Below, one piece after another: positions 10,400-23,357 of a stretch of 64,000 bases of DNA. The DNA comes from Klebsormidium nitens. Lineage: Eukaryota; Plantae; Klebsormidiophyceae. Position 1 is the stretch's first letter; the number at the start of each line of letters is the position of its first letter. The stretch lies in NCBI GenBank assembly GCA_000708835.1, contig DF237394.1, positions 13,788-77,787 of the forward strand. Direction: 5' to 3'. The notes beneath the pieces are model-generated. The model made no database searches, was not told where the DNA came from, and was given only the letters and a program-made list of their open reading frames with translations. The position numbers and the translations under genes were made by a program.

Positions 10400-13300
10400 T
10401 CATAGAACGACTCTCGTCAACGTTTGTTCGCGCTTTTCTACAGCGGCACACAGGCACTCGGGAAGGGGGTTCGCATAAAAGTACTCCTCGCCTTTCCTCG
10501 CCTCCTGTCTGCTCATCCCCTCGTCTTTCAAGCCCTTGGCTCGCACCCGCGCCTGCCCAGAGTCGCTGCCCTGAGCCGCCGCCAGCTGCTGCCAACACGT
10601 GGCAACGTCAACGTTCCCGGCAGCGAACTCGTCCAAGACCGGAATCAGCTCCTTTCCTTGCAGATGTATTGTTTTCCTATGCCCCGAGAATCGTCGGTGC
10701 CCTCGCACAGCTTTCGCCATGTTGCCCGAGAAGGTTGCGACGAAGACGTCACTTGCAACACTGATGACGTAGTCCACTGCGGCCCATTGATTCAAGTGGG
10801 CTTGCAGGGCGGTCAGCTGCGCCGGCGGGACCAGCGACTCCTGGAGACGCACGACAACTTTTCACCATGCAACCAGATTCGGATTCTCACTAGAGGTGCT
10901 GAGCCAGCGGTTCTGGTCAAACAGACTTAATGTGCAGCAGAAATAGTAGCCAGGGATCCCAGAGCCCTGTGCTGGAGCTGATCAAGACGCCGAGCAATCA
11001 GCGCGCTCCACATTTCATTGGCTCCAGTGCGATCGGACAACGCTGAGGATAAAAAGAGCAAACAACCCGGCCGTGAGGAGCACTGCCGTCACATGGTCGC
11101 TCGCCCATTTGCTCCATGTCACTGCTCTAATTAGTATTTGTGTCGCAAAGCACCGTGAGTCCGAGGGCCATTCACACTGCTGGTAGCCTCACCTTGGTAA
11201 CTAGGTTGGGGAACTGCTCTCTAAGCGGAGCCAGCGCGTCCGGTCCGCCAAAGAGCTCCCCCGAGGCCAAGTAAATCACTGTATCGCGCCCGAAGCCGAG
11301 CGCGCGCAGAGTTAGGCCCACCTCCGAGGGGCTGAGCGGGCACCGCCCCGAGCGGCGCGCCTCGAGCGGGTTGATCTCCTTCACGCGCCACTGCGGCGTG
11401 GCCAGCCTGGAAACGAAAGAGGGCAATGTCATGGGTTTTTCTGTCTTTATTTGGGGAGATTTTCAGGCAGAACCGTGAACAAAAGCGCAACAAGAGACTG
11501 GCGGACAAGAGAAAAGAAAGTGGGGCCAGCACGCATGGCCTACAGGGTCGGGGTGCGGATTGTTTCAGATCGGTCTGGGTTTCAGATCGGTCTCGAAGCC
11601 TCGCTTTCAGCGTTCAGGAGTACAGGACTAGGTATACATCCTAACGGAGAGTATGCGGGGATTGCACGTCCCGGTCGGGCGATATCCAAAGAACGAGACG
11701 AGAGAGAGCATATTAGCAGGGCGTTTCCCTACGCGACAGAACGAGAGCTTCTTTGACACGAGACTTTCCTCTTTACGACATCAAGACCCACATCTCTTCA
11801 CAGAAAAGCTCACCTGACCGCTGTCAGTGCGTCTGCCTCTGCGGGCGCGAGGCCGTGCGTGCAGCCGCTGAATGCCAGCACGTCCTTCTCGTACCGCAGG
11901 TGCAACGCCACAAAGGGTCCCCGCGCCCGAAGCTTTTGCACCAAGCCGTCGGCCAGGGTGCGCATGGGCGCCGCAAAGCGCAGCGCGTGGAATGCGACCT
12001 TGCAGCGCAGCTTCTGGACTGAGGGCGGCAGCTCGTTGTTGGCCAGCGTGGTGTCAGTCTTGGCGACCTCGATCACCTGGCACGCGGGGGAGAAACAGCT
12101 GGCGGGCATGCTAGAGGGTGGGCGGAGGTTTAACGAGCATAAAAACTGCCCTGCAACGCGATAAGCTGGAAAAGGGCGTTGGTTAGGTGGAACGTCGTCT
12201 GAAAGCCAGCCGTCGGTCAGATTGATTAATCAAGAAGTCAAGAAGGACTTCTTCGCTTAAGCCAAGTGGTTTGAAGCTGCTGACATGCAATGGTTAGGAC
12301 CCAGTACAACGCTTAGGTGATCTGAAGTCTGAGAATGGAGGGGCGATCTTATATTTAGCCACACTCCCTTCATTTCTGCGTGCTTTCAGAATTCACTGAG
12401 GTAAACCTATTCCAAAAAGGAATGCACCATGTGCCGACGTTTCAGTTGGCGGACTCTATCTCGACTTTGGACGTTCTCCCTAGACTGCGGGACGTCCACT
12501 TCGTCTCTCTGTATTGATTGTGACCAGCGGGATGACTAAAAAGACAGCTCCATAATGCCGGGTCCCTCAAAATGTGACAATAAGGGCGTACCTTGTAGTT
12601 CTGCCAGAGGGGGGCGATCATGCTGTGGTAGTACTGCAGGTCGGACCACGTCTTGAAGTGTTTCCGCGCCACGGGGGCACCCTGCAGCTCTGCCGGGAGG
12701 GCAGCCACCACCGGCACGTCATCCGGGAGGGCCTCGATAAAGAACGGCAGGTCGAACAGCTCCTCAAACGTGCTACACAAAGACAGCACACGGAAGTCAG
12801 ACTGCGGACTGCCCGGTGGACTGCCCGGTTGCTTGCAGTGCGGTTACTATCTATCAATGGGTTGACAGGACGCAATTTCTCCCACATGCTGAAGACCCTA
12901 TCTCGGAGATTGTAGACATGCCACCACTATCTTTGGCTGCCCTGCTCCCGCTCTGACCTCGCAAAGCAGCTGTGCTGCGTCCATTTGCGTCTGTCCAAAG
13001 TCACCCTGAGTTGTAGAACGGATGCCAAAAGCACCTGCGAAGCTTGTTCTGGAATACAACTATCAGCTTTTCAGTCACCCTGTGTGGAGACAGTGTGAGG
13101 GATATGGCCCTCACCTGTTGTCCTGCCAGAACGACCGTGCGTCCAGGTACGGCACGACCAGCGCGGCCTCCAACACTCGGGCGATTGCCACCATATCCGC
13201 GATCCCCAGCCGCATCTGGTTCAGACCCCCATTGGCATGGACCACCAGATGTCCCTTGGGGTTCGCCAACACCCGCAGCTCAGTTTCTATGCACGGCACA

Positions 13301-14061
13301 TCTTGATTGCCCTCTGGCTGCTGCCAGACACCCCCTGCCCCCTCTGTCGCTGGGCCTAACGAGCCCCTTTCTTCTCCAATGGCGCTATCAACGATCCCCA
13401 AGTTTTTGCTTGATGAGCCCAGCTCCAACGATCCAGGGAGGAGTGTCTTCAAATCCGTGCTTCCATCCGTGTCTGGTGGTTTCCCAGATCCAGCTTCCAA
13501 GAGAACCACATCCTGAGCTGGAGTTTCCCACCCAGCCTGGTTCTCGATGGCCTGCAACTGGAAGAAGCACAGTCAGGGGTAAGACACAAACAAGCATGGC
13601 TGGGTCCCACATTGGAGTCCATAAGCCCCCGCGTGACGTCAGGGAGACAGGAACCGACTGGCGAAGGTGGTAGATAACGGGGTAGTTGTGGCATCGATCA
13701 ATCTAAACATAAGCACCCCAAGCCAGGTGCTCTACTTTTGCTGACTGCGGCAGCGCTCTCCTGCACAACCATTTGATCCCCCAATCCACACCTCAACAGC
13801 ATTACAGTATTCCTTCGCCCATTTCGAGCCCCACATTTGACAAGCTCCGGATGCTGCGCAGCCTACCGTGTGCGGGGGCAGTTCGGTGGCACCGTCTGCT
13901 GGTTGTACCGCCCAACGCACCACTGCTTCCCAAGCGACAGTGATGCCCACCATGCTGCACATGCTTAACAGCAAACATTTTTGGCACACTCCAACTCTCC
14001 AACGACGCGTTGAGGTTCCTGGCGATGCAGGAAGGTCATAAAAACTTGTCCTCCTTCGCAT
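10400..14061 (-). CDS. O-fucosyltransferase-family (GT106) glycosyltransferase, FRIABLE1/RRT-like
   Basis: Exons ~14061-13867, 13551-13115, 12772-12592, 12076-11814, 11406-11193, 10840-10400, all GT-AG. Family motifs [68 protein letters not shown] and [15 protein letters not shown]-terminal hydrophobic segment suggests a type II membrane protein. Exon 1 is less certain. Confidence 0.92.
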
Positions 14062-14547
14062 CTTCCATGCATCTGCTCTTTGGATGCCTTCGACTTGGAT
14101 GGAGTTCCATGCAAAGAAGGTGGTGCACCCTTTCAAGCAAGTACTCTTTTAACTAGTTTCAGATCTTGGTGCAATGCGGCGGAAGCACGCTGGCCAGCAG
14201 CATGTTCTCTCGCCACCAATGGAACAGGCATGCACAATGCACCATGCATGTGGGAGTCGTGGGGGAACCCCCTGCAATGGGATTCGGAACCCGGATCGGG
14301 TTTGTCACTCAGAAATTCTGATCTCGTTCGGAGTCGTGAAGGGTTAAGAAGCAAAACCCTGCGGTTATCCACTAGACCGCCCAGGGCCAAGGGTGGCATT
14401 GCCGACCGCACCAGCAAGTACTCGAGCAGGGCATCCATAGTTCACGTATGGCATGCAGGAAAAGTGAAAGTCTGCTGGGGCAGACAATTGCCGCTGAGGC
14501 CGTTCTTGTGCGGGGGTTGAAGGAACTCGTGTGATTCTGTCGCCATC

Positions 14548-17500
14548 ATGGACGCGCGGCCACAAGCGCAGCCAATGGACTCGGAGGAGGCGCTGCTGGC
14601 TGCCCAGCAGAGTTTCGTCCGCAGCATGGAGGCCTCATCTGTGCAGCTCAAAGTAAAGCGGCCGGTACCAAATCAGCCGCTGAAAGATTCGGCTGCTGCC
14701 TCCGAGAAAGCCTTGTCGGGTGCACGAACTCCAAGGGTTTCTTGGTCGCCTGAGGTGGTGGACAATGGAGGACCGACGGCGACAGAGGGCGGTGCCACGG
14801 CGATCGGAACAATTGCGTCCAGGGGGGCAGCTGGCACAATTGCAGGAGGTGCGGGTGTAGGGGCTGCTACAAGGCCCATCAAAGCATTCTCCGCTCGTCC
14901 GACAGGCCCGTCATTCCGCAAGGAAAGTGGTGCTGCTGGAGATGCCCCCGATGAGCCACGTGCCAGGGTAGGGGCTGGGGCAGATCTGACGGCCGGCGAT
15001 GATGTCTCTGACGATGAGAGTCTGGAAAGGGGCGATGGGGGTGGTGCAGACCCCATGTCAGAATCGGTGGATCGCCCCCCGTACGAGCCGCTGCCCACCG
15101 TGGGTGCCATCAAAGAGAAGGGCTATGGAGGGGCAGGCGCCAAAGACGCCGGCTTTGTCGCCCAAGTGCCGGCACCCCAAGCAACACCCTTCCCGGAAGC
15201 AAGGCATCGCTCGGAGGGGCCGGTGGGTGCAGGTTTCGCATTGAAAAGAGTGGATGCCCAAGCTGCAATGCTGCCACAGATGTGCCAGGAGGCTTCTTAA
15301 ATATGATTTTTGACTCCATGGTTGGATGAGCAGCAGCTTTCCCAAGCGTATCACGATACTTGACAAAATTGAAGTGAGAGGATCGAATCATGCTCCCTTG
15401 TCTTTGTGGTGTCGCGTGCCATTCATCTTGTTGGCTGGACTACGTACTGCTCAATCAAGCAATGTCCGCACAAATTTGCTGCCATTACTCTGCCGGACAG
15501 TTCTTATGTCACATGGAATACAGTCAGCTGTCAAAAGAAAGGAGTAGAATCATTTGCTATCCTCTCCGCCATCACAATTGCACCCCTTTCTGTGTGCAGC
15601 ACTGGGCCCCTGTCCCCCAGGTGGTGCTGGAGCGCCTCCAACCAGAGGCGGACAGCTCACCTCCATTCGACCCAGCCATGGCCATCCCCCTCTCTCGACC
15701 AGACCCTGCCCACAAGAAGGCAGCGATGAGCAAGTTCCGTCAAGCTATGCTCGATAGTCGCAAGACGGGGGAGCCGAACAGTCAGCCCAAGGATCAGCGG
15801 CGGGTGATAGCTGGTCCAAAGGGGGAAGTTGCCAGGGCGCAGGCTGCCAATAGAGGCGACACCTTTGAGGGGGCAAATATTCGAGCGAGTGCGGGCAATG
15901 AGGAAAGCCGGTTGGACACGAGTTATGGTAAGCAAGCAGCGCTGAGAAGCCGCAGTGGGGGGGAAGGCACCGTAGTGGAGCAATCTGGAGCTCCTGCGCC
16001 TTCTTTGGAGGAGGAAGCAATTGACAGGGAGAATCGTGCACGTTTGGCGGGGATGTCAGCGGCCGAGGTGGCGGCAGAGCAGGCGGAGCTGCAGCAGATG
16101 CTGCCACCTGGCGTACTCGAGGCGCTCCGCAAAAGGGGGGCCAGGAAACTGGGGGCTGGGGGACATGACGAAGCGAGGAGCTCTTTGGTGGAAAAGAAGC
16201 TTGATATTAGCCAGGAGTTAGAAGAGACCAGCGCCGTTAAGAGTGCAGGCGCAAGGACAGAGAAGCCCCCGCTCCGACGGCAGCCCACTCCTCTGCCTGG
16301 CGCCATTCCATCAGTGCAAAAAGGGCCGCCAGTCAGCCTCGGGGCAATTTCTGAGGATGGGGGGGTAGAAGTGGCATCAGGCGACACAGCAATTGGTATT
16401 TCTCGTGGGAAAGAAGATCTGAAGGCACCGCCAGAACGGGTAACCCCGGCAGAAGGAACACCTTTGCGGAGGCAACCCACGCCTCTTCCTGGCGCGATTC
16501 CGAAAGCAGTCAAGTCCGGAGGGGCAACTTTAGATTCTCTCGCAGAAGACGAGGGGGAGACGGGGGACGACAGCGGTGCAGGGTCAAGAAGCACGGGAGA
16601 ACGGCTGTTACGGCAGCCCACGCCGATGCCGGGTGCGATCCTGCAGCACACCCCGCAGCGGAAACCGGAATTGGGCGTCCTCATTGAAGAGGATGGGGAC
16701 GAACCGGCGGCTGACGAGATGGAGGAAGGCTTGCTCAGCACGGAGGAGGAGGTCAGTGGGCCGGAGGGCGCATCGGTAGGGAGAGCGGACGAGCTTCAAG
16801 GGGCGTTGGCTAGACAGCCGACTCCTCTGCCTGGCGCTATTCCTGTCGTCAAAGGTTTGCGCGAGCCTGTTCTCGCTCCTTTGGAGGAAAGCCCCGAGGA
16901 TGAGGAAGACGAAGCACGGGCGGAGGTGTGCAGTGCAGGCGCCGCGGGGACCAGTGGACGCTTGGCGCGGCAGCCGACGCCTCTGCCGGGGGCCATTCCG
17001 AGTCCGCGCACGAAGCCCGGGGCTGCGCTGGCGACTTTAGAGGAAGAAGAGGGCGAGGAGGATACGGGCGAAGAGAGAGAGGAGCGGCCTCCGGGACAAC
17101 CAACGGACCCTGTGCCAAGCAGCAGCGGGGTCCCTGAGCCAAGCTTGCATTCCGCTTCGGAATCTGAAAGAGAGCCGGGCGCCAAAGGGGTGTCCGCGTC
17201 CTCTTTCTCACACGCTGAGCCTCGTGTGTCTCCGCTGATGTTCGCACCGGTCAATGCGTCCGACATGCGCTTCGACCTCGATGGGGCGCTCCTCGCGCCG
17301 GAGCCCGGCGGGCCGGGCAGTGCTGACGTTACCACGAAGGTGGCGGAGCGCGACATCCTGCGGAGCGAGGGGGATCCCTCAGGTACGGGGTACTCGCTGC
17401 AGGAGGCTGCGAAGCTGGCGCGCAGCACGGTGCCGAGTCAGCGGGCGGCCGCCCTGCGCTTGATTGCAGGGGTGCTGAGGAAGGCTGTAGGTGGGATGCA

Positions 17501-20500
17501 TGGTGGAGAGGGGGCGGAAAGTGACGAAAGGGGGCTCTGGAGGGGCGTGTGGGCTCGAGTGTGGGCGTATGCGCTGGGGCCAAATTTGCAGTTGGCAGTC
17601 GTGCTCAGGTGAGGCCGACAGAACGGAACCCAGAGGGACGGGTCAGAACAGCAGTCCGTATCCTGTCTGCCATAGGACGAGCTAGGGGGCAACGTTCGTC
17701 GTCTCCTGAAGAGACCGGTGCATAATTCCGATCTGCGGAAACTCTTTTTCTGTGGGTAATTCACTCAAGTCTGGGATTACGTCGGACGGGACTCTGCGGA
17801 AGACAGCGTTCGTCTTTGAGGGAACAGCAAGAGGCGTGCCTTAGCTTGGCGAGTTCTGTTGGTGAAATGTGCAAGTGATGACATACCAACGAGCAAGCCC
17901 TTAGCAAGAAGCGCCTGTACTCCATCAGTATTCAAGCAATCACACCCATCATAGCACCATTCTCCTCGACACTGCTGCTACGCTTGATTGCTTGCATCGT
18001 ACCAGAATGCTTATAGAGGAGTTGCTTTGTGATCCGATTCATGGTTCCTCCCATGTCTCTCGTTGTTCCCTTTTTCCGCTTCGAATTATCCCCGCCTCCT
18101 TTGACAAAGTACTTTTTGCCGTGTTCCCAGGTCTGCTCTGGACGACTCCCATGCGACGGTGCTCGCCGCGGCCGCGCACGCGCTGCTGGCGCTGCTGACG
18201 GGCGTCGAGAACGAAACCAATTTTGAAGATGCGGAGGCGGTTTGGAGAAGCCCACACGAGTCTGCGTCACTATTTACGGGGCCATGCGACCGCTCGTCGG
18301 GTGTTCTGACGGCGGGTGAGCCGGCCGCACAAATATGCACCTGTTGCCAACGCTCCTTACTTCGCGCTGGTAATCCTAACAGCAAGCGACAATTGAGGGC
18401 CAGCTTGCTTCGCCTTCGTGAGAGGCTTACTTGCTCTATCAGGTCACACCGTCCGCTTTGACTTGCCAGAAAGGTGTTCTTGGACCTATTGGAACGAGGG
18501 GCATCCGGTCCCCGCAGGAGTCTAGCTTTCCTTCAGCTGTCGAGCAGTCCGTTCTCGCGGTTCACCCGCCTCTGTTAACTCCTTGTCCTTTGAGATGGTC
18601 GCTCTTACTGACAGTCCCTCTGTGCGGGCAGGGGTGAGCAGTTGGGGCCGGTGGGCGGCCCGAGCGAGCGTGGACACAAGTGCGGCCGCGGAGGGCGACG
18701 AAGTGCGCGAAGAGACGGTGGGCGACGATGCGCGGGTGGCCGCTGGTGACGTGGTGGTGGGGCTGATCCGCATGGGCATCCTGCCCCGCATCAGATTTAT
18801 CCTTGAGGTGGGCGGACGATGCTACTCGGGACCAGGCTTGGCGAGATGCGAAGCAAGGAGCGCGGGTTCGGGGGCGAGTTCGGATGGGTGTCGTCTTCCT
18901 TGCTTTTCGGGCAAGCGCTGCAGCAATTGGCAGAAACATGCGCAATTCTCGATCTAAAGTTGACGGGAAGTCCGCCTATACCAGCTGTACGATTACCTTC
19001 GCTTCTTAAGATGCGGTGTAGAAGACGATTTGACACACGCCGTTCAAGGTTTTGCCGTGCTAGAATATGAATCTTCCATGACTCGCGCTTCAGAAGATCA
19101 GCTCAAGCGAGCCTTGTGGCTGCCATCTCGGAGCGTGGACTTCCTGCTGTTTGCAGCCTCTTACTGTGCAGGGCTTACGGTGATTACATGATTCAGCGCC
19201 CTTCTACGCTCTGATAGCTGTTAGGGAAGCGGAAGCACGAAGGAGAAAAAAGCAGCCGCTCAAGCAAAATACTGCTTTTCTTCTTCGCATTTTGAGTATT
19301 TTCCTAGCTTAAGCATTTCACTCCGCAGGTCCTGAGCCTGCCCGCCCTGGACGAGCCCCTCTTGGCCACGCTGGTGACCCTAGCCCGCCACTCGGCCGCG
19401 GCAGCCCGCGCGGTCCGCGACTGCCCGCGGCTGCTGCCCACGCTGCGGGGCATCTTCGTGGGCGTGCTCGCGCCTGCAGTGCGCTCCCCGATACCCAGCC
19501 ACACCGCGCAGGAGACGGCGGTCAAGCTGCTCACGGTGAGTGCCTGCGGTCAAGCACGATACCCGGTTGGCCGAGCGGGATTGACCCACATCATAGCGAT
19601 TGTTTGCTCTCTACTCGTTTCTGGAGGCGCGGATTGCGCCTCCTTTTGAGGGCCAAGAGTTGCATGTTGGTGAGGGTGGGTGTGCACTATAACAGTTCTG
19701 AAGGCAATTAAGAGCTGCACTCTGCATGCATCATTTTTGTAGAACTAAGAAAACCTCCTTGCAGAGCTAAGACCAGCTTTGTTGGCATTCACCTTCTACA
19801 TCACGTCCCTGATGGCCCTGCTCTCTTTCCCCCCGCTCTCAGATGCTGTGCCTGGCAGACCGTGCCTCTGCCGCCCTGGTTTCCGATACGGGCCTCCTCT
19901 CGTTGGCCAAGCGCCACCTTGTGTCCCGGCCCCGCGCACCCCTCCGCTTCCCGCCCGCCTTCTCACGAGTGCTCCGCCTCTGGCGCACCTGTGCGCTGTA
20001 CGGCCGGGGGGGCGGCTCTCTCTCGGACTACTACGGCGCCCTTGCGGTTGTCCTCGAGCCGCCGGCGGGGGACAGAGCCGCTGCAGAAGCAGCCCCCTGG
20101 GGAGAAAGCGCTGAGGCATACCTGCTCTTGGAGGCGTTAGCTCGGACGTTGCCGAGTGGTCGGGAAGACGAGTCGGCGGACGAGGAGCGAGCGGAGGTGC
20201 TTTTGGACTGGGCAACGGTTGGGCCTCTGGTTGAGACGGCCACAAAATGGCTGAGCCCCGGGGTACTGGGGGCGCTTCCTGAGACGCGGACAAGCCCAGG
20301 TGGTGCCGCCCCCTTGCACGCGCTGGCAGCAGCCGTGCACTTCCTGGCGACCGTCGCGGAGAGGAACGCGGGGCAGCTAGGTCGCCTCGAAAGGGCCCTG
20401 GTCGACGCTCTGCTCGTCGAGGGGGGAGGCCTTCGCACCGCTGCTTCGCATACCAGCCCCAGTAGGGAGGGCAAACGTCCGGTGGGCGACGATCCCAGAA

Positions 20501-23357
20501 CGGAGCGCGAGGTCGCGGCTTCTGGTCGAGTCAGTTATTTCGAGTTTCTCAGCGAGAGGGTCGCTCTAGGGGGAAACGACGATGGGGGCACCCTGGCAGC
20601 AGCCTCGTGCCTGCAGGGCCTGCTCAGGCTGACGTCAGCGCTTGCCGCAAGGGAGAGACTGGGCGCCACGGCAGCAGAAAGAGCAGCCGGGCCTATTCTT
20701 GCTGGACGAAGCGGTACCGCACTGGAGGCGGGGGGGGACAAAAGCAGTCTGTCCAGCATCGAGGGACAAATGATGCTATCTTTTGGCGGCCTGGCTGAGC
20801 GGCTGACTGATGTGCTGGTGCGGGGCGGCGCTTGGGAGGTGCAGGAGGAGGAGCAGCGCCCGGCGGCTGCGGGCCTGGGGCTGGGCTGGGGGCTGCCCGC
20901 CCGGGGGGTGTGGGGGGAGGGGCTGGCAGTGCGGAGAGCGAGGGCGGGGCTGCTTGCCTCGCTGTACGAGACGTTCCCGTTGAACAGCGTAGGAAAGGGA
21001 GATGTCAGTGCGCAAAGTGCTGCGGCAGTGCCGGAACCTTCCACAAGTGGACGCGACACGGCTGCAGAGGGTAAGGTCGGTGGAGCAGCCTCGAGACAGG
21101 CGATACGACGCCTCAGAGCGGCTTTGGCTGCCATCAGAACGATGGGGCCCGGGAACTTCGAGTCGGTGCTGGCGCTCCTCTCGTCCGCTATCTTGAGCAC
21201 GGACGTTCTAGAGGTGCTTCTGGCCGAGGGGGGGGCTCTCCTGCAGAGCGTCCGCAGCGGCAGTCAGAGCGGTCGGGGGAGTCTGCCGAGTGCAGCGGAG
21301 GTGCGGCGGGTGCTTCTGCCCCACTTTGCTGGCCAGTGGCTCGGCCGGTGGACCGACGAATCTGACGAGGGCGGCGGTGCAGATGGTTGGGACATTGAGA
21401 CGGAAGTGAACAGGCTGTTAGACGCAGACGGGACTTCCGAAAGGGCACAGGCCTCGGAAGGTCGTTCTGGTGGTTCATTATCAGGCCGCATAAACCTAGA
21501 GCCAAGTAGGACAAGTACGAGCGGACCGGGGGCAGCGCTCGCAGTTTCCATCTCCGGCCAGAAGCTTCTCCTCCCGGCTGACTGGCTACTCAGCCCCACC
21601 GCTGTCGCCGCCCAGCTGAGCTCGAGCGCCGTTTCGGAAGAAGGCAGCGGCGACATTGAGGACGGTGTGAAGCAGCTCGTGCGGGCGGGCCTGGCCCTGC
21701 TGCTCGGCTTGGAAGCGTGCGAACGTCTAGAGCGTCCCGAAGGGCAGAGCAAGGATAGCAAGAGCGGTGGACACCTTTTGGGGGTCCCGCTGGTCAGGAA
21801 GCTGCACGCGCTGAGCGAGGCGTTCCTGGCCGCAGGAGAGCTGTTCCTGGATAGCGACGTAGCGCCGCTGCTGCAGGCACTGCAGGAGCTGTATGGGCGA
21901 GAACTTCCGCCGGTTCCGGCAGATGAGAATGCTGCAAGCGCAGATGCAGCACCCGAGGCGCCTCCGAGCGACAATTCAGCAATGTCTGGCCGCCGGGATC
22001 AGCGAGCGCTCGACTTTGCGGTGGCTACGGGGGCGCCCTACGAGGGCTTTGCCGAGGGCCTGGCGGAGCAGTTCGCGGCCACTTCGTTTGGGGACCCCGC
22101 TTTTGGCCGCCAGGTGGTGCTGCTGCTTCGAGAGGATGTGACACCTGGCGCTCTGCGATTGGTGGTCTGGAAGGCTCTGGCAGATGCACGAGCGCTGCAT
22201 CTGCTACCGCCTGCCAGGGACTGCCTGGGCGATCCGCGTGCGTACCTCCCTGCTTTAGCGGTAAGCCTAGGTCCTCGTCATGCTGGCGTCACGTCTTTGA
22301 TGCGCCAAGCGATTGGACGCTGAGCAAGATAGCTGATGTTCCCGGCACTCATGTAAATGAAAACAGTCTGACGCGACTTTACGTTTTCCGATCCTAGAAT
22401 CAAATGTCCAGGTCAGGAGATCATGGGCCAACGTGCATCGCAACGCTTTTGAAGTGTTATGTTGCCGCGGCTCACGGAGCCCCCTTGCTTGCATTTTCAC
22501 TTGCAAGACACCGAAAAGGTCACTGTCCTGGCAGCCAGAGATGTCTGGCCGCCAACAAGCAAGCAGAGCGCAAGTTGGAACTGCAGACGAGCACCGTCTC
22601 CGTCTCTGCAGGCGGAAAAGGACGCCCTCGAGCAGTACGCGGCCGCCCTGCGTTCCGGTGCGCTCGACCGGACCATCGCCCTCGGGCCGGAGGGCATGTC
22701 CGTGACCGCTCTCATTGCGCTGCACCATCTGGGCGCCGCCCTCGACGACACCGCAGGCCCGCCGGGTGAGAATGGGGGCCGGGGGGCCGGAAGCAGCGCC
22801 CCAAGCAGCGCACCGGGGCCTGTTCACACCGATGACGGCGGGAGGGAGCGGCAAGAGCCCGGCGCTGCTGGCGGGGCGGAGGCGGAGAAGAAGCGCGGGG
22901 TGCAGGGGCTTGTGCAGGGCTGGCTCTGGAGTGCCGCGCAGGGCCGCTGCGATGCGGTGAGTGGGGGTGCGGAACGGGACTGGCCTTCCTCCGCTCGAGA
23001 AAGGCTGAATAATGGATTCGTGTAGAGGCCCGCAAGGAGCGAGAGGGAGACGACAGATTGTTTTCCGGTTGAGTGTGTGTCGCTTGTCATCCTTCTTCGG
23101 CTTTTCAGCGCTTTGCTTGCGCTTGCCTGCTTAAGAATTGAGAACTCACAAATAGAGCTTTGCCTGTGCAGAACACGGTCGCTGCTTTTGTGGCGCACGC
23201 CCCGGCCTCCCCTGACTCCGTGAGCGGCAGCCGGCGCAGCAGCCGCCGCGTGGCCGCCCTTGTCGAGGCAGCGGGGGGGGACAGCACGCTCGTGTCTCTG
23301 CTGCAAGGTCTGGGGATGGTGGACCCGGGCCGGGAGTCTGCGGCAGTGACGGAATAA
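14548..23357 (+). CDS. RPAP1: RNA polymerase II-associated protein 1 (RPAP1 / MINIYO-like)
   Basis: Approximate exons 14548-15222, 15621-17608, ~18131-18315, ~18633-18807, ~19329-19535, ~19843-22260, ~22610-22956, ~23171-23357. N-terminal DSEEALLAAQQSF, then VGAIKEKG and PFPEARHRS as in IYO. RPAP1_N-like IDRENRARLAGMSAAEVAAEQAEL and RPAP1_C-like RFDLDG...GYSLQEAAKLARSTVPSQR, followed by ARM-like helical repeats. Confidence 0.9.
16272..17060 (+). repeat. Five-copy protein-level repeat (LxRQPTP[LM]PGAI...Lxx[IL]xE-acidic) inside RPAP1 exon 2
   Basis: Copies start at 16272, 16464, 16605, 16806 and 16962 in the 15390..17612 ORF. Peptide cores are near-identical while synonymous positions and linkers differ. 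Confidence 0.95.

Follow-up and report, generated by a model that had tools for sequence, protein, structure and literature searches.

A clade-restricted array of bipartite linear motifs in the RPAP1/MINIYO orthologue of Klebsormidium nitens

The window analyzed here, a 64,000-nucleotide stretch of Klebsormidium nitens DNA (contig DF237394.1, positions 13,788 to 77,787), contains the gene KFL_004450060, whose 2066-aa product (GAQ88619.1; P0005 in our alignments) is the RPAP1/MINIYO orthologue of this alga. The linker between the RPAP1_N and RPAP1_C domains of the protein carries an array of five modules, each built from two short motifs, here called A and B, at a fixed distance from each other. 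RPAP1/MINIYO is an essential factor in RNA polymerase II (Pol II) biogenesis, and its nuclear entry has been proposed as a switch from stemness to differentiation in both plants and mammals; K. nitens is a streptophyte alga that serves as a model for studies of plant terrestrialization. An initial annotation of the window, made from the DNA letters alone, had read the modules as kinase sites, each coupled to a docking motif for the phosphatase PP2A-B56.

Results

The same annotation had named the gene RPAP1/MINIYO, a call borne out by three Pfam domains that all score above their gathering thresholds: RPAP1_N at 16017..16148 (PF08621, E 2.6e-14, 53.2 bits versus a cutoff of 25.3), RPAP1_C at 17262..17486 (PF08620, E 2.6e-16, 59.8 bits versus 27), and TPR_RPAP1 (PF25766, 32 bits versus 27) within the open reading frame (ORF) at 19843-22323. 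These domains, the exons, and the array are all on the plus strand. RPAP1_N precedes RPAP1_C, as the RPAP1 family requires, and the array lies between them in the same exon and frame. Exon 1 is an ORF that runs from the ATG at 14548 to the spliced joint at 15221 (14548..15221), and its translation agrees with the N-terminus of P0005. Exon 2 (15599..17605), supported by transcript contigs and Pfam matches, holds RPAP1_N, the array, and RPAP1_C in a single frame, and the downstream exons (18128..22323; 18128-18314, 18631-18805, 19327-19534, and 19842 onward), delimited by GT..AG joints, encode the α-solenoid body including TPR_RPAP1. The final seven residues of RPAP1_N, RKRGARK (16128-16148), form a basic stretch resembling a nuclear localization signal (NLS), and the array starts about 40 residues beyond it. 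In Arabidopsis IYO, the dominant NLS (NLSA, amino acids 254-259) lies directly after RPAP1_N at 209-254 (PMC6748027), and by analogy RKRGARK would be its positional counterpart.

Transcript contigs from four sequencing runs (X3, X4, X13, and X14), belonging to four studies, were aligned to window positions 14400-20300. Five joints with GT..AG ends (15221>15599, 17605>18128, 18314>18631, 18805>19327, and 19534>19842) identify these contigs as spliced transcripts of the plus strand, and the first of the joints was found in all four runs. Exon 2 is spliced at both ends, and 15599-17605, or the large part of it that a contig reaches, is covered by every contig without gap or mismatch. The motif array is present in the mature mRNA, which answers the exon inclusion check proposed by the initial annotation with unbroken coverage inside spliced transcripts from four studies. 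A separate contig of 205 nt at 17629-17833 in intron 2 (run X3, depth 2.7) is probably unspliced pre-mRNA or minor intron retention.

The array itself (16272-17048) consists of five units of about 29 residues, in each of which a motif A of the form L-[RLA]-R-Q-P-T-P-[LM]-P-G-A-I-[PL] is separated by nine variable residues from a motif B of the form L-x-x-[IL]-x-E-[EDS]. Unit 1 (16272..16358) has motif A LRRQPTPLPGAIP at 16272-16310 and motif B LGAISED at 16338-16358; unit 2 (16464..16550) has the same motif A, LRRQPTPLPGAIP, at 16464-16502 and LDSLAED at 16530-16550; unit 3 (16605..16691) has LLRQPTPMPGAIL at 16605-16643 and LGVLIEE at 16671-16691; unit 4 (16806..16892) has LARQPTPLPGAIP at 16806-16844 and LAPLEES at 16872-16892; and unit 5 (16962..17048) has LARQPTPLPGAIP at 16962-17000 and LATLEEE at 17028-17048, continuing in an acidic tail to about 17060. 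The leucine of motif B is 17 residues C-terminal of the motif A threonine in all five units, so that the units, coordinates, and spacing given in the initial annotation are all present. When the non-core residues were shuffled 200,000 times, LxxIxE-type matches coincided at one offset in at most two units, and all five units would share the offset by chance with an analytically estimated probability of ~1e-12. At the DNA level, Tandem Repeats Finder detected no array at the locus, and identity of the 38-nt cores with the reference copy is 61-82%; the high identity between copies that marks a recent DNA tandem repeat or gene-conversion array is absent.

Four orthologues of the gene (P0001-P0004) were obtained as genomic contigs from public assemblies (Logan, JGI, and ENA samples), encoding five units in P0001 and eight each in P0002, P0003, and P0004, which with the five of K. 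nitens gives 34 units in five orthologues. Their consensus is L-x-R-Q-P-T-P-[LM]-P-G-x-I-P for motif A and L-x-x-[LI]-x-E-[ED] for motif B. Numbering from the motif A threonine as position 0, the arginine at -3, the glutamine at -2, and the prolines at +1 and +3 are each present in 34/34 units; leucine at -5 is found in 33, threonine at 0 in 32 (never replaced by serine), and isoleucine at +6 in 31. Other motif A positions vary between few residues: -1 is proline in 27 units and glycine in 7, +2 is methionine in 17 and leucine in 16, +4 is glycine in 26 and serine in 8, and +7 is proline in 25. Motif A is thus near-invariant at 10 of its 13 positions. Within motif B, leucine occupies +17 in 26 units, +20 is leucine in 24, isoleucine in 2, and valine in 2, glutamate is found at +22 in 33, and positions +23 to +28 are mostly acidic. 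With a relaxed motif B pattern, which allows a broader first residue and aspartate or glutamate at position 6, the motif begins at +17 in 28/34 units, at +18 in three, and at +14 in one, and is missing from two; a single P0004 unit in which the threonine is changed to lysine also lacks motif B. Both motifs therefore persist in the four relatives, with the +17 spacing retained in those 28 units. Most of the linkers between the motifs hold a basic residue near +10/+11, and the spacers between units range from 40 to 123 residues.

Comparison of K. nitens with P0001, at a synonymous divergence (dS) of ~0.5, gave ratios of nonsynonymous to synonymous divergence (omega) of 0.03 for each of the two motifs, against 0.32 for the intra-unit linker, 0.47 for the inter-unit spacers, and 0.36 for the flanks. 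No indels were found within units and three were found in spacers. Selection on both motifs and on their spacing, proposed initially from the five K. nitens copies, is upheld by these omega values and by the absence of intra-unit indels. The statement that the core codons differ synonymously was likewise correct: across the 10 pairs of K. nitens paralogous units, the proportion of synonymous differences (pS) in motif A is 0.68, which is saturated, and that of nonsynonymous differences (pN) is 0.097, with a pN of 0.72 in the nine-residue linker. Saturated pS together with low pN indicates that the copies are old and that their protein sequence has been held by purifying selection, and recent duplication or gene conversion does not account for the K. 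nitens copies.

At variable positions, orthologous units of K. nitens and P0001 are 0.58-0.81 identical, and paralogous units within K. nitens only 0.04-0.19. The earlier statement that the linkers share no sequence consequently holds between paralogues (4-19%) but not between orthologues, whose linkers are moderately conserved. The greater likeness of orthologues than of paralogues indicates that at least units 1 and 2, K. nitens unit 5, and the last unit predate the split of the taxa. Units 1 and 2 have orthologous units in all four relatives, unit 3 is intact in P0001-P0003 and degenerate in P0004, and unit 5 is orthologous to unit 7 of P0002 and P0003. Units 3-7 of P0004 and units 5-6 of P0002 are recent local duplicates. 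Relics of units were found in P0004, at the position aligned to K. nitens unit 3, and in K. nitens at 17085..17186, where a decayed sixth unit (..GQPTDPVPSSS..SESERE) aligns to the intact last unit of P0002-P0004. Taken together, the sequences indicate that the array evolves through birth and death of units.

RPAP1 homologues were sought exhaustively with HMMER among 1.84 billion representative sequences; of the 160 recovered, 150 were listed and 125 contained both domains. Among the matches listed, the median linker between RPAP1_N and RPAP1_C is 116 residues long in the 125 two-domain homologues, against 352-472 residues for the linkers of the Klebsormidium-like clade, the extra length corresponding to the 5-8 units. 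No unit-like pattern was detected in the linkers of the 120 listed two-domain homologues outside the clade, in line with the initial annotation, which was aware of no such array in Arabidopsis IYO or human RPAP1; those without the array include Chara braunii, Chlorokybus atmophyticus, Riccia, Calypogeia, Selaginella, Diphasiastrum, and angiosperm MINIYO. Its absence from these bracketing lineages identifies the array as an innovation of the Klebsormidium-like lineage. Protein searches by word index, run in three length classes, matched only the five RPAP1 orthologues and no other protein family with the array, in a type of search to which single motif copies elsewhere are undetectable, and a scan of metagenome contigs for a degenerate motif A core DNA sequence and a protein-profile search for the locus gave no matches in a collection that evidently lacks the P0002 and P0004 samples. 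No paper in the literature searched names KFL_004450060 or describes such an array. In its canonical order of RPAP1_N, RPAP1_C, and TPR_RPAP1, in the NLS-like stretch that ends RPAP1_N as in Arabidopsis IYO, and in its C-terminal helical solenoid, the K. nitens protein clearly belongs to the RPAP1/MINIYO (IYO)/yeast Rba50 family, and the array represents a linker elaboration that is new and restricted to this clade.

A different linker feature was observed in short RPAP1 homologues of ~400-500 aa, probably fungal and Rba50-like, which have in common a block L-x-x-L-H-E-K-Y(-F-P) (P0058, P0066, P0075, P0101, P0105, P0108, P0110, P0116, P0120, P0136, and P0144). It happens to match the PP2A-B56 docking pattern and is distinct from the Klebsormidium motif.

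AlphaFold2 was run on exon 2 with a five-sequence alignment and on residues 440-1639 of P0005 with 39 sequences (predicted template modeling score, pTM, 0.68). In both models, the array has a predicted local distance difference test score (pLDDT) of 28-45 and no secondary structure, and in the second the C-terminal body of RPAP1 is a confident helical solenoid. The array is thus predicted to be intrinsically disordered, and accessible in the way that B56 docking motifs require. Disorder, variable spacers, and tiny conserved islands are together the signature of short linear motifs. We did not detect docking of the array on the solenoid, a weak negative result given that only five sequences span the array. 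A sequence search of the PDB matched no RPAP1 structure; its sole match, 3frt_A, aligns the acidic, proline-rich C-terminal tail of CHMP3 with P0005 ~641-717 (units 4-5) at E 0.036, which we judge to be compositional and due to chance.

Motif B was compared with the ELM pattern DOC_PP2A_B56_1 ([LMFYWIC]..I.E or L..[IVLWC].E), which is matched by 5/5 K. nitens units and, across the orthologues, by 26/34 units at +17 and 30/34 within +14 to +18. The claim that motif B fits Lxx[IL]xE followed by downstream acidic residues accordingly stands, mostly in the weak form with leucine at position 4. For motif A, the initial annotation had offered two kinase assignments, basophilic (CDPK/SnRK1) and proline-directed, and only the second is retained. 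The CAMK-type consensus is matched by L-5 and R-3 but contradicted by proline at +1 in 34/34 units and by glycine or serine, rather than a hydrophobic residue, at +4; CAMK-group kinases exceptionally disfavor a +1 proline (Zhu et al. 2005, as cited in PMC9876800). The invariant +1 proline and the residues at +4 rule against a CDPK/SnRK1 site. DYRK kinases require arginine at -3 and proline at +1 (PMC10952393), and by sequence motif A conforms to this R-x-x-S/T-P consensus, with R-3 and P+1 in 34/34 units and a threonine acceptor in 32/34. Unlike DYRK/YAK1 sites, the array is also conserved at L-5, Q-2, P-1, P+3, G+4, I+6, and P+7. Constraint on motif A is far above what a kinase consensus needs, which suggests, at the level of sequence, that motif A is itself a docking element.

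Other features of the locus were recorded. The 225 residues encoded by exon 1 (14548-15221), the first of the protein, are Gly/Ala-rich and without Pfam match. The K. nitens RPAP1, at 2066 aa, compares with ~1450-1750 aa for land-plant MINIYO, the Gly/Ala-rich N-terminus and long insertions in the solenoid adding length. Three of the four contigs from relatives (L001 328-711, L002 699-1343, and L003 665-1162) carry, upstream of RPAP1 and on the opposite strand, a gene resembling GDP-fucose protein O-fucosyltransferase (O-FucT; PF10250), and ORFs on the minus strand of the window at ~11810-13560 resemble this gene, so that gene order appears to be conserved.

Discussion

We consider it probable, at roughly 0.7, that the bipartite linear motifs in the RPAP1 linker of Klebsormidium-like algae form an array specific to this clade that is under selection, disordered, and multivalent and serves in docking or regulation. 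Each unit would be one bipartite ligand, formed by the proline-rich motif A and an acidic amphipathic motif B, with both halves contacted simultaneously by one surface of a partner. The near-fixed spacing points to joint engagement of motifs A and B by one such surface, and joint reading of the halves would bring selection against indels within units but not between them. Presence of 5-8 copies would confer multivalency, either as avidity or by allowing several partners per RPAP1. Given the invariant R(-3)...T-P, the threonine is likely to be phosphorylated by a proline-directed kinase of the DYRK/YAK1 type, and kinases of this family are present in plants. Phosphorylation of the threonine may tune partner binding and, hence, the role of RPAP1 in Pol II assembly or import; the location of the array near the NLS-like stretch makes a function in nuclear import or Pol II assembly plausible.

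Several points weigh against this account, some of them against PP2A-B56 as the partner. To our knowledge, motif A fits no class of linear motif: neither SH3 class I/II, WW, GYF, 14-3-3, FHA, Polo-box, Cks1, or Fbw7 phosphodegron ligands nor SIAH, calcineurin PxIxIT/LxVP, MAPK D-motif, cyclin RxL, or bipartite NLS sequences. The strict threonine, never serine, could be a structural contact rather than a phosphosite. The isoleucine preferred at position 4 of motif B is mostly absent (2/34 units, with leucine in 24/34), and an LxxLxE-type motif in Emi2 binds B56 at only 41 uM (PMC7108865). PP2A-B56 deselects sites with a +1 proline, for which kcat/Km is 50-100 fold lower, and it dephosphorylated engineered TP substrates alike with LxxIxE at 12 or 70 residues, so that no strict spacing is required (PMC7327492). 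A model in which B56 is simply tethered therefore leaves the fixed 17-residue spacing unexplained. Finally, B56-type motifs are not enriched in the linkers of other RPAP1 proteins (16 observed versus 13.6 expected), giving no sign of an ancestral link between RPAP1 and B56.

Judged by its sequence match, PP2A-B56 is the leading named candidate for the reader of motif B, although we put it forward only tentatively. Motif B shares with the LxxIxE motifs bound by PP2A-B56 the pattern L..[IVLWC].E, a location in a segment predicted to be disordered, and acidic residues on its C-terminal side. B56 binding is helped by basic residues up to ~15 residues N-terminal of LxxIxE (PMC7108865), and those found 6-7 and 20-21 positions before motif B in the array are reminiscent of the N-terminal basic patch of KIF4A and RepoMan. 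The array differs from the LxxIxE system in having mostly leucine at position 4, a basic element of just 1-2 residues, and, beside motif B, a candidate phosphosite with the +1 proline that PP2A-B56 disfavors. In engineered constructs with one, two, or four copies of LxxIxE, the amount of B56 bound and the tightness of binding rise with copy number (PMC7327492), and these constructs, the multi-LxxIxE B56 inhibitor of Kruse et al. (2020), resemble the array in carrying multiple motifs of this type on flexible spacers in one polypeptide; the array differs in being natural, in its predicted weaker motifs, and in having a second conserved motif at fixed spacing. If B56 does bind, the weakness of single motifs with leucine at position 4 may be offset by multivalency and by the nearby basic residues. 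A more specific proposal, that RPAP1 of Klebsormidium-like algae is a natural multivalent recruiter or sponge of PP2A-B56, each module pairing a weak LxxLxE dock with a DYRK/YAK1-type R-x-x-T-P switch that tunes B56 occupancy near the NLS once phosphorylated, is speculative and on present evidence unlikely; if true, the 5-8 graded switches would couple nutrient or differentiation signals to nuclear import or the assembly of Pol II.

The full model of the initial annotation, in which a basophilic and/or proline-directed kinase phosphorylates each threonine and B56 docked 17 residues downstream dephosphorylates it, giving five self-contained switches, likewise has a low chance of being correct. 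The match of motif B to the B56 pattern at +17 in 26/34 units, in a disordered segment with acidic residues downstream, supports the part of the model that gives each site its own phosphatase dock, as do the dephosphorylation by PP2A-B56 of engineered TP sites with LxxIxE 12 residues away (PMC7327492) and, for the kinase, the conservation of L-5 and R-3. The model nevertheless does not predict the exact spacing, since distances of 12 and 70 residues are equivalent, and it assigns to PP2A-B56 a class of +1 proline sites on which its efficiency is 50-100 fold lower; proline-directed phosphothreonine with upstream basic residues is instead the preference of PP2A-B55 (PMC7327492). CDPK/SnRK1 are excluded as CAMK-type kinases by the invariant +1 proline (Zhu et al. 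2005, via PMC9876800), the glycine or serine at +4 also speaks against them, and no kinase consensus extends to as many as the ten near-invariant positions seen in motif A.

Also improbable is a constitutive docking platform independent of phosphorylation, in which the threonine is structural, B56 is not involved, and the partner is a Pol II biogenesis component such as an RPAP2/RIMA-like protein, a GPN protein, an importin, or a Pol II subunit. The long, rigid motif A and the fixed distance between motifs A and B would suit one structured surface, threonine is never replaced by serine in 34 units, and RPAP1/IYO is a known hub for GPN1/2, importin α, and Pol II (PMC6748027). Arabidopsis IYO, however, binds GPN1 through its first 209 residues and importin through its NLSs, not through the linker; other lineages lack the array, so core RPAP1 function needs none; and an R-x-x-T-P signature with acidic flanks is typical of regulated phosphosites.

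Very improbable, too, is a folded repeat domain built by the units, or their intramolecular binding to the RPAP1 α-solenoid as an autoinhibitory pseudo-ligand: the modules are regular with fixed internal spacing, and pLDDT rises slightly at the motif A positions in the first AlphaFold2 model, but the low pLDDT without structure or solenoid docking (weak evidence, as the alignment over the array is shallow) and the variable spacers of 40-123 residues argue against it. An origin as functionless repeat expansion or as a non-coding or retained-intron artifact of a GC-rich genome, suggested by long chance ORFs on both strands and by low-complexity, acidic spacers, is refuted by inclusion of the array in spliced transcripts, where two Pfam domains flank it in the same frame, by motif omega values of ~0.03 with saturated synonymous sites, by retention of the array in five taxa with conserved gene order, and by the absence of a DNA-level tandem repeat.

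The docking or regulation array favored here defines a new bipartite linear motif. It is limited to one small lineage and the role proposed for it is deduced from its features, and we therefore regard its importance as moderate. Each unit yields a distinct tryptic peptide, so that phosphorylation is directly checkable in phosphoproteomes. Involvement of B56 or of a DYRK/YAK1 kinase, if borne out, would link a conserved signaling axis to Pol II assembly. As a selected, expressed, clade-restricted array placed just past an NLS-like segment, it offers a natural handle on the regulation of RPAP1.

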